DNA of 64,000 bases, taken from positions 62,001 through 126,000 of the forward strand of contig JAHDYR010000066.1 in assembly GCA_019828565.1 (NCBI GenBank), in the 5' to 3' direction. The stretch is from Carpediemonas membranifera BICM (Eukaryota; Protista; Fornicata). Shown here one piece after another: positions 281-45,347 of the stretch (the first letter of the stretch is position 1; the number at the start of each line of letters is the position of its first letter). The notes below the pieces were generated by a model. That model saw only the letters and a list, made by a program, of their open reading frames with translations. It did no database searches and was not told the origin of the DNA. Made by a program: the position numbers and the translations under genes.

Positions 281-384
281 CGGTTGGATGTCGGCCATGG
301 TGGATGGGACAGACGGTGGCCTGTGCTTGTGAATAGTGCAGCGGGTTCGCCATACGGCACTTGTCGGATGACCTGCTTAACGAT

Positions 385-1479
385 TTACGTTGCGCAGTAT
401 AAACACATTGTTCGAACCTCCAGACAGGGCCTGAAAGGAACGATCAAAGTGCCAAACTGACAAACAACATCATCCGTCCGTAGACGAATGTTGGCGGTTA
501 GCCAATTGATGATGCTGGAATGATGTTGGAAGGCGCGGGATCGATGTGCGACTGAACGGAGAGCCACTGAGCTCATCTTCCGTGGCAAGAGAACGCCACA
601 GGATGTCTCTGCAGCACTCTTGTCCCGATGATCAACATTCAGAGCATCAGGAACTGTTGCGCGCCACTGAGCACCACGGCACTGTGGATTTTCGCAGAGC
701 ATCACACGATGTGGGTGAACGTGCTGGTCATCACGCGGACGAACTCGCTTGTAGGGGGCGTGGCAGTGAGGGCAGACGACGGTGGTGCGATCCTCGTTAG
801 CCATGTTAAGATCGACAATGGTATACCCCTTGAGAAGGGGAACTATCTCTCTCGCGAACTTTCGATATGGCGCGCAAGGAATGAACATACCAGCAGGCGT
901 GGTGAATCCCGAGCTCCCGTAGAAGACTTTCAGGCGAATGGGGGTGGCGATGGGATGGTGGCGACGCCAACCGAACTCCCGAGCCAACTGTTGGCCGCAG
1001 AGGGCGAAGTGCTTCTGGCGAAGGATGTGGTTCGCAAAGCGCACTCGGCGGAAAGACTTACGCATTCCAGCCTCGAAAATGTCGTTCGCGTTGTCCAGCA
1101 CAAACCTAATAGAGTTGTTGATACTCACTAGTCTTGTGCTCTTGAACGACGCGGCCGTCATATCAAAGCCGAAACTTGGCGTCTTAGTGTATCCGCACTT
1201 TGGAAGGACGCCGGAGCTGGTGGTGCCATCGGGGTGCCTGATGTAATACCCTCCGATGGACCTCGCGCCCGGGTCGAACCCCATGAGGTGGGCATCAGGA
1301 TCCGGCGCGGGCAGAGCATCGGCATTATTGGTCCCGAGTCGGGGGCGCTCTTTCTCCCGCCCTTTCGCTCGCTTTCGAACAGGCATGCTCGCATCATGTT
1401 GTGGCCGATAGTGGCCGCCTCGCTTAACCGTCACCGCCACACAGACCCCATCGGTGCTCAGGCTGAGCAGACGGCCCAT
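385..1479 (-). pseudogene. Fanzor/TnpB-like RuvC nuclease, C-terminal part (frameshifted)
   Basis: RuvC-I GFDPG, VFYG, relocated Glu in NEDRTTVVCPHC, CENPQC zinc finger and RuvC-III HRDKSA. A missing base near 606 shifts the C-terminus; the restored frame ends at TGA 470-472. Confidence 0.85.
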
Positions 1480-24666: not shown

Positions 24667-25261
24667 GGTTGAACTTGGAATTTGTGGTGCAGTTTAAGAA
24701 TGAATCAGTGTGGTGTTTAGAGGTTTATGCGGAGGATTCATGTAAAGGTGACTTAAGCTGTCGACCCCCCTGGGATGAACTCCAGAGGACTGAACAGGTT
24801 CAGTCTGACGGCCCACCTGTCGTACACCAGAAGGGTAGCGGACATGAGGGCGTCGGCGATTGTTTAGACTCAACAATTTTAATCCTGCGCAGCACACTAC
24901 CTCCACTCACCCACTTCAGCCCTCGTCTGTACCATCGGGCTGTCGTGCTTTCAGTCGTCGGTCTGCACGAAAAGATGCGTCGTCTGTCGTCCATCGTCTG
25001 TGTCGAACGCTGCTGTCTTCTTTCGCGTCTGTGCTCGTCTGTTACGCGCTCATCTGTCGTCCATTGCCGGCGTCTGAAGCTCATGTCGTCGTCGTCATCT
25101 TCGTCTGTTGTGAGAGAGAGACACTAGTGGTGGAAAGCGGTTGTAGCTGGTAGTAAAGACGCTTTGTGTTTTATGATGCTGGTTTCTTGTGTTTTGAGGG
25201 ATGCTGCTAGCTGATGAACCCTGAAAAGAAATGATCGATGCAGGCAGCTCAATAGACTCCA

Positions 25262-27165
25262 ATGCCTTCCAAGATATACACGGTGAAGGCTTCCGTTAAC
25301 AAGGCCATTTGCGAGATTAACGGCGGAGGCGATAACAACGCGCCGCGGCGAGGAAATCTTGAACCCGGCATGCGTTCTTTCACGCAGGCTAAGTACACAT
25401 TCACTTGCCTGCTTGCGTACGTCGCTGCATCTGCGCACGCGTTGACCCCACCTAGGACGGTCAACCTGTTCGACCAGGAGGTCCTCAAGCAGATCGTCAG
25501 CATTGCTCAGCAAAAGGTGTCGAAGGCAAAGGCAGCGGATCGGTGCAGGTGGATTGGCGATCTGGCGATGTGGAGGGACCCTGACATAACCCCATTCGTC
25601 CAGGACTTCGTCACGGCTTATAGCTACCTTGGCTTGTGCAAGCCATTTGACACCTGGTTGGGCGAGTACTCCACAGCCACCCGGGTCTGGCTCTCGCGCG
25701 CGTCACCCGGGTACATGACCCGTCTTCGTGCTGGATTAGAACGGGTGCGTCCGCTCCTCCATGATCAGCCGGGTGTTCGACAGGATTTTCTCGACACCCT
25801 AGGCGAGCTCGACACTGAGGTTGCCGCCATAGCCGCCGATCATGACAGGTATCATCCTCAAATGCATGCATCGCCCGAGGGGCAACGGGTGGGTCGCACT
25901 GGTACCGTGGCCGAGGCCCTTGTCGGCGTGCTGGCGTGCGTCACGCGCATGAGTGCTGCAGTGACCAAGCTGGTCACACTCACTCGTGCCGTGAACCTCG
26001 AGCTCAGTCAGGCCCTGCCAGAGCCGAAGCTCATTCCGTTCGTGCCGATGGCACCGGTCAAGCCTGGGTTCATGACCATCGAGCGCGGAGTAACAGCGCT
26101 CACCCCATCGATGAAGCGGCGCCTGCGTGTGCACGTGAATTGGTCAGCAACCAAGAATTTGACCGACGACCAGGTGGCTGAATACGAGCGTGATCACGGC
26201 GACATCACCAAGCTCCGCAGAGTGCTCTCTGTGAAGACAGACGGGGACTCTGCTGCTGTGACGGTTTGGGTGGGTCGCGAGAAATACCGTGGCGGTCGGG
26301 TGGCTGACCGGCCCACGTACAAAAAGGTAGCAGCAACAAGCGGGCTCGGCTCGGTCAGGACGACGCCGAGGCTAATCCTGCCCCGGACATTCAAGCTCTC
26401 ATGGGCTTCGACCCTGGTGCTCGGTCGCTGGGCGGCTACACGATCCGCCGCCCAGACGGGCAGAGTGTATCTGGCGTACTCGCTAAGTGTGGCTACACTG
26501 CCACCCCCTCTTTCCGCGTGAATATGAGCGCAGCATCGTTCAAAACGACAAGTCTAGAGGCTCTCAAACAGTCGATTAGGTTTGTCCATGAGAACATCGT
26601 TCAGATCATCAACGAGGGGACGAGAAAGTGTTTCCGCCATGCGACTTTTGCCAATCACTGTCTGCGCCAGAAGCACTTCGCCCGGGCTGGACGTAAACTC
26701 CTGGATGATCTCGGCGGGCGCCCCCCGGAGCCCATTCACCTCGAAGTCGCGTATGGGGCTGCACTGTTTGGTTCCGCCGGTACTCCCTCCTGTGCTCCGT
26801 ACCGCCACTTTGCTCGAGCTCTTCCTGGCATCATGCTCCGGCACAACGTCGTCGTGACTGTCACGATGGTCTCGGAATTCCGCACTTCCATCGTGTGCCC
26901 ATACTGCAAAGCACACTTCAGACGTGTGGTGCACACACCCCGCACCATGCTCTGCCAGAATCCCGCGTGCGAGGGAGCTCCATGGCGCGTTGAACGGCTA
27001 CGTCGGCATCCCGAGCAGAGAGACATACTTCTCAATCTCTCTCACCGAGATAAGAGCGCCAGCGAGAACATCCTTTGGTGCACCTACGATGCAACTTCAG
27101 ATCAGATAGAGCAATCTCCTTTTCACTACGACTCCCAGAGAGGTGCTCTTCCTCACTATCATTAA
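25262..27165 (+). CDS. Fanzor (eukaryotic TnpB-like RNA-guided nuclease), about 634 aa with one -1 frameshift near 26321-26325
   Basis: SVKTDG, GFDPG (RuvC-I), VAYG, SEFRTSIVCPYC, CQNPAC and HRDKSASENI (RuvC-III). ORFs 25262-26521 and 26401-27165 join if one A is added to the A5 run. Confidence 0.85.
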
Positions 27166-27312
27166 CTTGCTAAGTTGAGCAAGCACGCGCTGCAGCGGCG
27201 CGTGATATGCTGCGCACGATTGATAGAGTATGATGAACCACACTGCGATCCTGATGCTGCTTGGATCACTGTGTGTCTTTTGGACTCAAGTATTCTTATC
27301 CTGCGCAGCACA
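27166..27312 (+). ncRNA. Candidate Fanzor omega-RNA scaffold
   Basis: Lies between the Fanzor stop and the element end, with three stems: CTTGCT/AGCAAG (27166-27183), CACGCGC/GCGCGTG (27184-27204) and CACAC..GATCC/GGATC..GTGTG (27239-27275). Confidence 0.6.
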
Positions 27313-27535
27313 ATCAGGTGGGGGCTGCTTCGGCGGCCATCTAACCAGGCAACAAGTCACCTCATGCCGCGCGGGGCGCGGTTTTGCTGATGTTTAAGTG
27401 AGCGTGTATAAATTGAGTTTAAGAATGGACGGATGTAACAACGGTATGTGGTTTATGGTTCATTACAACGGTATGTGGTACTCGCCATGCCCCGGGTCAC
27501 TCTACCCATCCTATGTTCCATTTATATTGCCGGGC

Positions 27536-35062: not shown

Positions 35063-36170
35063 GACGTCGCGCAAACTTTTGTGTTGCGCAGTATAAACAC
35101 ATTGTTCGAACCTCCAGACAGGGCCTGAAAGGAACGATCGAAGTGCCAAACTGTACAACGTCATCCGTCCGTAGACGAATGTTGGCGGTTAGCCAATTGA
35201 TGATGCTGGAATGATGTTGGAAGGCGCGGGATCGATGTGCGACTGAACGGAGAGCCACTGAGCTCATCTTCCGTGGCAAGAGAACGCCACAGGATGTCTC
35301 TGCAGCACTCTTGTCCCGATGATCAACATTCAGAGCATCAGGAACTGTTGCGCGCCACTGAGCACCACGGCACTGTGGATTTTCGCAGAGCATCACACGA
35401 TGTGGGTGAACGTGCTGGTCATCACGCGGACGAACTCGCTTGTAGGGGGCGTGGCAGTGAGGGCAGACGACGGTGGTGCGATCCTCGTTAACCATGTTAA
35501 GATCGACAATGGTATACCTCTTGAGAAGGGGTACTATCTCTCTCGCGAACTTTCGATATGGCGCGCAAGGAATGAACATACCAGCAGGCGTGGTGAATCC
35601 CGAGCTCCCGTAGAAGACTTTCAGGCGAATGGGGGTGGCGATGGGAAGGTGGCGACGCCAACCGAACTCCCGAGCCAACTGTTGGCCGCAGAGGGCGAAG
35701 TGCTTCTGGCGAAGGATGTGGTTCGCAAAGCGCACTCGGCGGAAAGACTTACGCATTCCAGCCTCGAAAATGTCGTTCGCGTTGTCCAGCACAAACCTAA
35801 TAGAGTTGTTGATACTCACTAGTCTTGTGCTCTTGAACGACGCGGCCGTCATATCAAAGCCGAAACTTGGCGTCTTAGTGTATCCGCACTTTGGAAGGAC
35901 GCCGGAGCTGGTGGTGCCATCGGGGTGCCTGATGTAATACCCTCCGATGGACCTCGCGCCCGGGTCGAACCCCATGAGGTGGGCATCAGGATCCGGCGCG
36001 GGCAGAGCATCGGCATTATTGGTCCCGAGTCGGGGGCGCTCTTTCTCCCGCCCTTTCGCTCGCTTTCGAACAGGCATGCTCGCATCATGTTGTGGCCGAT
36101 AGTGGCCGCCTCGCTTAACCGTCACCGCCACACAGACCCCATCGGTGCTCAGGCTGAGCAGACGGCCCAT
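34941..36170 (-). pseudogene. Fanzor/TnpB-like RuvC nuclease, C-terminal part (frameshifted; as assembled it reads out of the element)
   Basis: Same motifs as 385-1479 and the same missing base near 35297; the restored stop is at 35161-35163. Confidence 0.85.
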
Positions 36171-36706
36171 TGACCTGGGGTTGTCCCGGTAGCGTCTTTT
36201 TTGGAGGCGTGCGGGAGTGTGGGATTAATTCCCACACGATGACAGAAGTTCTCGTTCAGTAGGCCCATCGTTTCACGATCACGGGCCATGAAGCCCGGCC
36301 GGACGGGGGCCATGGGCACGATCGGCACGAGGCGAGGCTGGCGGAGCGACATCGAGTACTCCCCGTTGAAGTGGCTGATGAGGCCACTCAACTTCTCCAC
36401 TCCGTCTGCAATTGCCCAGACGCAAGAGAGAATGCGTGGGGCAGCCTGGGAGACTGGGAGCCCGTCGTTCTCACCCATGTGAGCCGCCCAGAACAGCAAG
36501 GGGAGACACGCGAGGATCACAGGGTTGACCCTGCCGAGGATGGCGTGAACGCCGGCCAACTCCTGCTGGAAGAAGACGTCCACGAAGAAGACGCTTTGTG
36601 GAAGCCCTGGAGAAGACGATCTCCCTACCGACTTAAGACGTGAGTAGGAGGGATACAGGGCAGTGTTGCGCAGTATAAACACATTGTTCGACCCTTCAAT
36701 AGCACA
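35080..36706 (-). mobile_element. Fanzor-carrying non-autonomous element, family A, copy 2 (TGTG...CACA, TSD TTT)
   Basis: Near-identical to 389-2013; TTT at 35077-35079 and 36707-36709; 29-bp direct repeat 35081-35109 / 36663-36691. Confidence 0.92.
36149..36662 (-). pseudogene. Upstream fragment of the family A Fanzor
   Basis: VSQAAPRILSCV...PRLVPIVPMAPVRPGFM aligns to family B; needs a -1 shift near 36200-36230 to join the RuvC ORF. Confidence 0.8.
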
Positions 36707-36739
36707 TTTTGACCAGTCCAAACCTGCGAAATCGACCTT

Positions 36740-44168: not shown

Positions 44169-44618
44169 TTTGGTTGATTCAGTCTTTTCTGCGCCAAAGT
44201 TGAAAGTGCAGAATAATGCCCTTGCCAACGTTAAACCCCATCATCTCTTCGCGACACCTGATGCGAACCCAAGCTTCGCTTGGGGTTGCCGCGAGCTGGA
44301 GGGCCATGAAAACAAAGTCTGGAATTTAATTTCAACAAACGTCCATTGGACAGGGTGGCCGCGGTCCTGTACGGGTGGCCCTCCATCTGTGTCACACGGG
44401 GCAATCACGAGTTGTAGCCATTTCGCCGACGTCACTGGCTGCTCCGACACAGAATGATGTGCACTCGAACAAACCTGGACTGGCAGGGCCGCTATATTGC
44501 CTAATGTAGACGTGTAAATTGTGCACTCGGACACGTGTTTCTGAAAGTCCCGTCCAGTGTCTAATTCGGCGTTATTGTGCGCCAAATGATAAAGAGTGCA
44601 GTTTAGCGCAGAGCATCC

Positions 44619-44664
44619 TGTGCTATTGAAGGGCCGAACAATGTGTTATATACTGCGCAACACA
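44619..44664 (+). mobile_element. 46-bp solo terminal unit of family A (TGTG...CACA, TSD TCC)
   Basis: Matches the reverse complement of 36663-36706 with 1 substitution and 1 inserted base; TCC at 44616-44618 and 44665-44667. Confidence 0.9.
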
Positions 44665-45347
44665 TCCATCTGCGGCTCTGACTCACTCAGACGTCTGCCC
44701 TGTACCACTGCGTTTTGTGGGTGAGTCAACCTCAACATCCTTGGATGCACACTGGGTCGACTCGGGTCGACTCGGCAGAGGATGTTCTGCGGAACCCATC
44801 AGTCAGTGTCGCGAATCCCGTGATTCACCCAGCGTGCACTTGCCTGTTCAATATGATGCACTCTAAGTGACCATGCTTGACTCGGGTTTCCAGTGGCTCT
44901 ACCATCAATCGGGAGCAGAGTCGTGCCCTGACCAATACCCAGTCAGAATGAATTCGTTTGGTAGCGTCAGCATGGCACCTACAACATACGGAACCGGAGC
45001 TCGTCGCCCTGTCATCACGGATGCGACAAGCGGTTCATTCGACCAGGCATCAGCCGGTCGCCCAAACTATCCATACCTGCCATTCAGCACGTGTTCGTTC
45101 CTGGCCCCATTCACGACCGGCGGAGCCTGGACACAGTCATATACCGTCATCGACTATGATTCACCGTGTCGCGTGAGTCACGATGACCTGATAGACCAAT
45201 GTGACAGGCAGGGAATAGCATGCCGGGGTTCACCAACGCTCGAGAGATGGCGAGGTATGACATAATTCGTATTTATGGGTTATGTATACATAACTCAGAC
45301 CAACGGCGGGACTCACTTATCAAACAAGAGAGACAGCCTTGAACCAC

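Follow-up and report, generated by a model that had tools for sequence, protein, structure and literature searches.

Solo 43-bp units in Carpediemonas membranifera: probable remnants of Fanzor-like carriers with Ty3/gypsy-type ends

Introduction

What is the short unit that stands between two copies of TCC at positions 44616-44667 of the window, and how did it come to stand alone? The window is the whole 64 000-nucleotide stretch of the Carpediemonas membranifera BICM contig analysed here. The 46 letters between the TCC triplets were read directly in the window and are present as the first-pass annotation wrote them. They had been taken for a solo-LTR analogue of a Fanzor element, with a CACA 3' terminus and a 3-bp target-site duplication, left by recombination between two 29-bp direct repeats. 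A very small MITE moving by itself had been considered as an alternative. Solo LTRs with 5-bp duplications are well known, for example in Helenus (PMC10886601).

Results

Census and boundaries of the solo units

The 5' unit was searched in the 24.2-Mb genome with at most two mismatches. It occurred 124 times and its reversed control 0 times, so the unit is a member of a real repeat family and not a chance match. A unit was scored as solo when it was directly followed by unrelated DNA and not by the internal sequence CTGCCCTGT. About 105 of the 124 units were classified; 27 were solos (about 25%), and the solo count is therefore at least 27. All 27 end in ...GCGCAACA. The 5-mers that follow them vary (GGTGA, TGAGT, ACAAT, CCCCT, GACTC, GCGCA and others), each copying the five bases before TGTGCT. 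These 5-bp duplications are perfect in 19 solos, match at 4/5 bases in three and at three or fewer bases in five; an identical 5-mer on both sides is expected by chance at 1 in 1024 per locus. Longer elements have perfect 5-bp duplications in 11/16 cases, at exactly the same TGTGCT...GCGCAACA limits, and small terminal deletions account for most of the others. The bases that come next to the 3' ends of longer copies are variable.

These genome-wide junctions of solos and longer elements place the window solo at 44619-44662 (+ strand), with TGTGCT as its first bases and GCGCAACA as its last. It is 44 bp long, i.e. the canonical 43 bp plus one private A, and lies between two copies of CATCC (44614-44618 and 44663-44667). 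The CA that follows position 44662 belongs to the duplication. The CACA terminus and the 3-bp duplication are an artefact, since CATCC at this locus and CAAAA at one of the longer elements (element 2) have CA as their first bases by coincidence; no more than 5/27 solos agree with that parse, which was rejected. The solos carry no inverted repeats beyond TG/CA, or TGTG/CACA at most when bases are borrowed from the duplication, and the unit therefore lacks the terminal inverted repeats of a MITE or cut-and-paste transposon. It does show the TG...CA ends of a solo LTR and the same duplication length as the full copies, and corresponds to one terminal repeat of a longer element in the same genome. 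Read on the minus strand, it has the form of a TG...CA micro-LTR with TATA(T)AAC.

Three loci show other arrangements. At C26:655.8 kb (L074), the unit, a duplicated 5-mer and the 3' region of another copy come one after the other. At both L057 and L058 (C7:222032 and C7:288313), the same inverted partial unit stands before the solo.

Longer elements and their terminal repeats

Two longer family-A elements lie in the window, both on the minus strand. Element 1 occupies 389-2013, with the duplication ACGTA at 2014-2018; its 3' junction is 3 nt short (AAC slippage), leaving GTA. Both flanks of element 1 (window 383-389 and 2014-2040) contain the 11-nt word ACCTGCTTAAC. Element 2 (35082-36706, 1625 bp) contains a decayed Fanzor-like ORF and is bordered by CAAAA at 36707-36711 and 35077-35081. 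The ends of a family-B Fanzor-like element on the plus strand (24709-27312) are again TG...CA, and its 5-bp duplication is ATCAG (24704-24708 and 27313-27317). The 3' end of the family-B element, ...CTTATCCTGCGCAGCACA, is found again, as a separate LTR-like repeat, in many flanks (L002, L005, L016, L022, L059 and L070).

As first described, the window unit consists of the family-A 5' terminus and a single direct repeat: compared with the longer copies at 1972-2013 and 36665-36706, it differs by one substitution and the inserted A. Its first 21 nt also form, with one mismatch each, the 5' ends of the two 1.6-kb minus-strand elements (1993-2013 and 36686-36706). The segment 44619-44633 (+) corresponds, in Fanzor orientation, to the part restricted to the 5' end of longer elements, and its sequence, reverse-complemented, is that of the final bases of a Ty3/gypsy LTR. 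The segment 44634-44662 (+) is common with the 3' terminal direct repeat and contains the extra A. The window contains four copies of the direct repeat, one close to each end of elements 1 and 2. Its perfect core in the longer copies measures 28 nt instead of the 29 bp proposed, and 33/35 positions match if it is extended.

The two terminal repeats of the longer copies are systematically unequal. In every copy examined, the repeat at the other end is without its last 14 nt or has them replaced. The longer elements thus lack the two identical LTRs that a canonical cycle regenerates each time. Canonical LTR replication of the carrier was rejected in either orientation, since both repeats would become identical. 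A purine-rich tract lies directly before the complete unit in the longer copies, in a PPT-like position; neither a tRNA-type nor a gypsy-like PBS was seen in them. Identical internal deletions were found at different loci with different duplications (L032 and L041; L035 and L037), which indicates that only the ends are needed in cis. The 1.6-kb reference element is itself a deletion derivative. Among the two-repeat derivatives that can be aligned with the interior of longer copies, the shortest measures 282 bp. An odd 79-bp mini-form made of the unit and a partial second repeat (L013, C7:146037) is not clearly such a derivative.

The ORF of the longer copies

The ORF of the longer copies is antisense to the LTR orientation. 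Both family-A copies in the window are frameshifted, and their ORF is 50% identical to that of family B. It contains the motifs GFDPGA, NEDRTT-CPHC...C..C and HRDKSAA, of the general form E-x-x-T-T/S-x-x-C-P-x-C and RDKSA. Sequence searches of Pfam, NCBIfam and PDB returned nothing significant. A profile built from the two families recovered, beyond fragments from the same genome, two distant proteins, both scoring above the cut-off of PF07282 (Cas12f1-like TNB). The structure model had a low pLDDT (55); its top folds include Cas12f, CasX, Cas12g and Fanzor, with E-values of only 1e-3 to 1e-2. The ORF is likely a decayed Fanzor/TnpB-like gene.

The resident Ty3/gypsy element

Pairs of 5' termini located 4553 bp apart define a 4645-bp element. 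It encodes a gag with CCHC knuckles, RT, RNase H, an integrase (H2C2 + rve) and a chromodomain, and from this domain set it is a Ty3/gypsy chromovirus-like retrotransposon. This presumed helper has the gag, RT, RNase H and integrase order, the LTRs and the 5-bp duplication of Ty3/gypsy elements. Its LTRs are 92 bp long with TG...CA ends, and the 5-bp duplications were perfect in 8/8 insertions examined, one adjacent pair sharing a duplication. Aligned with the family-A unit in reverse complement, the last 33 nt of this LTR match it except for one substitution and a 2-nt gap, and the outer ends are also alike (TGATGC versus TGTTGC). This homology with the end of a genuine Ty3/gypsy LTR makes the analogy with solo LTRs closer than was first supposed. 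At G000:C26:695170-695620 (L075), the 92-bp gypsy LTR itself stands alone between two copies of AGAAT, so LTR-by-LTR collapse does occur in the Carpediemonas genome.

The target site

Solos and longer copies share the same target site and the same orientation. The layout at insertions is a GCAGTTTAAGG-like motif, 5 nt, the 5-bp duplication and then the element. Counted from the TGTGCT end, the motif begins at exactly -21: a GCA-N-N-T-T word has this position in 16/22 flanks of solos and in 20/26 flanks of longer elements. At the window solo, the motif reads GCAGTTTAGCG (44601-44611, +; start given as 21 nt before the element). The family-B element has the same layout, just downstream of the motif GCAGTTTAAGA. 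Gypsy copies adjoin the same GCAGTTTAAGG motif in both orientations, at a distance of 5 nt when they lie downstream of it and of 3 nt when they lie upstream. Some promoter sites were struck repeatedly: a gypsy copy lies 2 nt from a family-A solo at G000:C13:393.6 kb (L005/L046), a gypsy copy abuts a family-A 5' end at C11:577.5 kb (L045), and a single 5-bp duplication separates two gypsy copies at C1:1518.4 kb (L043/L044).

In the window, GCAGTTTAAGG-like motifs were observed six times for 0.47 expected; their positions include 8343, 9283, 22549 (-), 34421 (-), 41185 (-) and 7096 (-). From these motifs it is 13-42 nt downstream to the start codon of a long ORF, as for a core promoter or initiator element. 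The motif is therefore a candidate for such an element in the protist, and for the landing mark that gypsy and Fanzor carriers share. To our knowledge, the motif, its spacing (5 nt plus the 5-bp duplication) and a tethering factor have not been described for Carpediemonas. Ty3 integrates at Pol III start sites and Tf1 at Pol II promoters. Insertion in Carpediemonas is similar in that its distance from a short promoter-like motif is constant and the same site is struck repeatedly.

Ancestry of the solos

The family variants among the solos are A (11), C (10) and G (5). Rarer GGGCC, GGATC and TTTACAC subvariants were also found in solos, and each of them is present in longer copies. The T>C change of the window solo, which had been put forward with the extra A as diagnostic of a solo clade, is shared with a longer copy at C4:448660 and with a single solo of the C variant. 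At this diagnostic site the window solo is closest to L002, a longer copy; the extra A is found in the window solo alone. Solos do not form a clade of their own, since every subfamily variant of the longer copies is found among them, T>C is shared and the A is private. Different subfamilies produced them over and over. They do not represent a lineage that propagates itself, which argues against the tiny MITE.

Discussion

Origin of the window unit

The window unit is probably a remnant: the repeats of a carrier inserted by an integrase would have recombined in place, with deletion of the interior. The carrier would be a non-autonomous element in which a Fanzor/TnpB-like gene lies backwards between miniature LTR-derived ends. 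A retroviral-type (Ty3/gypsy) integrase would have inserted it 5 nt downstream of the GCAGTTTAAGG motif and duplicated CATCC. The shared end, the duplication length and the target site point to the gypsy enzyme. The two direct repeats (28 nt perfect, 33/35 extended) would later have recombined with each other in place, with loss of the 1.6-2.6-kb interior, by unequal exchange, single-strand annealing or microhomology-mediated joining after a break. The product would be one 43-bp hybrid unit within the original duplication, and the window copy would then have gained one A. A solo that keeps the original duplication is exactly the product expected if a longer copy recombines between its two repeats. 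We infer the collapse in place, as we do the way in which the carrier's DNA copy is produced. The solo-LTR analogue with its own duplication proposed at first therefore stands for the recombination-type structure and the presence of a target duplication, but not for the termini or the duplication length.

Repeats as short as 28-35 bp would hardly be expected to give so high a share of solos (about 25%), which counts against collapse in place. Carpediemonas membranifera is without Ku70/80 and DNA-PKcs, has a full alternative end-joining set and has kept single-strand annealing (PMC8516963). With this repair set-up, single-strand annealing or alternative end joining is a plausible route and repeat-mediated collapse a natural outcome of breaks, and it may account for a solo share of about one quarter despite the short repeats. 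The flanks of the window solo are unique in the genome, which contains no paralogous empty site, and scans of metagenomes gave 0 matches to the unit and 0 to the predicted empty site.

Collapse in place and direct insertion of a 43-bp unit predict an identical final sequence. The latter, in which the unit would be mobile on its own as a minimal element carrying both integrase-recognised ends, seems unlikely to us. It would agree with the precise and identical ends of the solos, with duplications that are mostly perfect at the canonical promoter-proximal site, with the sufficiency of the ends in cis and with the high solo share. However, the mixed ancestry of the solos mirrors the subfamilies of the longer copies, without a solo-specific lineage and with an extra A that is private, and derivatives with two repeats go down to 282 bp when only those alignable to the internal sequence are considered. 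Concerted insertion of the two ends of one 43-mer is also sterically unlikely on general grounds: such a duplex is short and stiff, far below the persistence length of DNA, and known intasomes hold two diverging ends of about 17-20 bp.

It is quite doubtful that the solos were left as solo LTRs by a different, autonomous retrotransposon, bounded by a pair of 43-bp LTRs and now lost or unsampled, instead of by the Fanzor carriers. The unit does resemble a complete micro-LTR (TG...CA, a TATA-like box and an adjoining PPT-like tract), the Fanzor carriers have just one complete unit, and the C-variant solos (10) almost equal the C-variant longer copies in number. Yet among the approximately 105 classified units no pair of complete units surrounds a coding retroelement, the sole 4.55-kb pairs being those of the gypsy element with 92-bp LTRs, and the solo subvariants are common to the Fanzor carriers.

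More speculatively, and against the odds in our opinion, the solos would not reflect passive decay: they could be the scars of frequent break-induced collapse in a protist that lacks classical end joining, perhaps through cutting within or close to the terminal repeats by the carrier's own Fanzor, or else 43-bp units inserted directly. If direct insertion were true, the 43-bp unit would be the smallest known substrate of a retroviral-type integrase. A 46-bp cut-and-paste DNA transposon with TGTG...CACA inverted ends and a 3-bp duplication, which the TCC/TCC flanks of the window unit and the AAA/AAA flanks of element 2 would suit, is hardly credible given its fit to so few solos, the repetition of the 5' flank by the 3' 5-mers and the lack of inverted repeats beyond TG/CA.

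Comparison with known elements

Read as a probable remnant of a collapsed carrier, the window unit resembles solo LTRs in its single terminal repeat, its TG...CA ends and a 5-bp duplication as in full copies. About one-fifth of the Carpediemonas solos are without matching flanks, as exchange between elements would give. The differences are the size of the unit (only 43 bp), the unequal repeats of its parent, which make the solo a hybrid, and the presence in this parent of a Fanzor-like nuclease gene in place of gag-pol. Like TRIM, LARD and SMART elements, which are mobilised in trans, the carrier is small and without RT or integrase coding; its ends are similar to those of a resident autonomous Ty3/gypsy partner, and its duplication has the same length. 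In contrast to them, it has no recognisable PBS, and its repeats are systematically non-identical, a difference that canonical reverse transcription would erase. Ginger DNA transposons have an integrase-like transposase, TGT...ACA ends and short duplications. DNA-level movement with TG...CA-type ends, as in Ginger, would explain the unequal repeats, but the family-A elements are without terminal inverted repeats. The shortest whole non-autonomous LTR element reported is SMART, at 292 bp (PMC10886601).

The published carriers of Fanzor1 in eukaryotes are DNA transposons (Bao and Jurka, 2013; PMC3627910). Both they and the Carpediemonas carriers are multi-copy non-autonomous elements with a TnpB/Fanzor-like ORF and without a transposase of their own, whereas the shell is LTR-derived in Carpediemonas. 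A 2026 review reports no documented association of Fanzor with a retroelement. The genome-wide census of solos, the correction of the duplication from 3 to 5 bp and the evidence of mixed ancestry are new here. Set against textbook solo LTRs, the unit has a length of 43 bp and its probable parent is a Fanzor-carrying, LTR-derived shell.

Significance

The corrected termini and duplication length matter for the definition of an omega-RNA guide or a TAM at the element edge. Repeats of about 30 bp would often collapse in a genome without Ku-dependent end joining. The window solo and its 26 siblings provide independent junction evidence for an integrase-type insertion of the Fanzor carriers of Carpediemonas, to which the TG...CA ends, the 5-bp duplications and the promoter-proximal targeting, all common with the resident Ty3/gypsy element, point.
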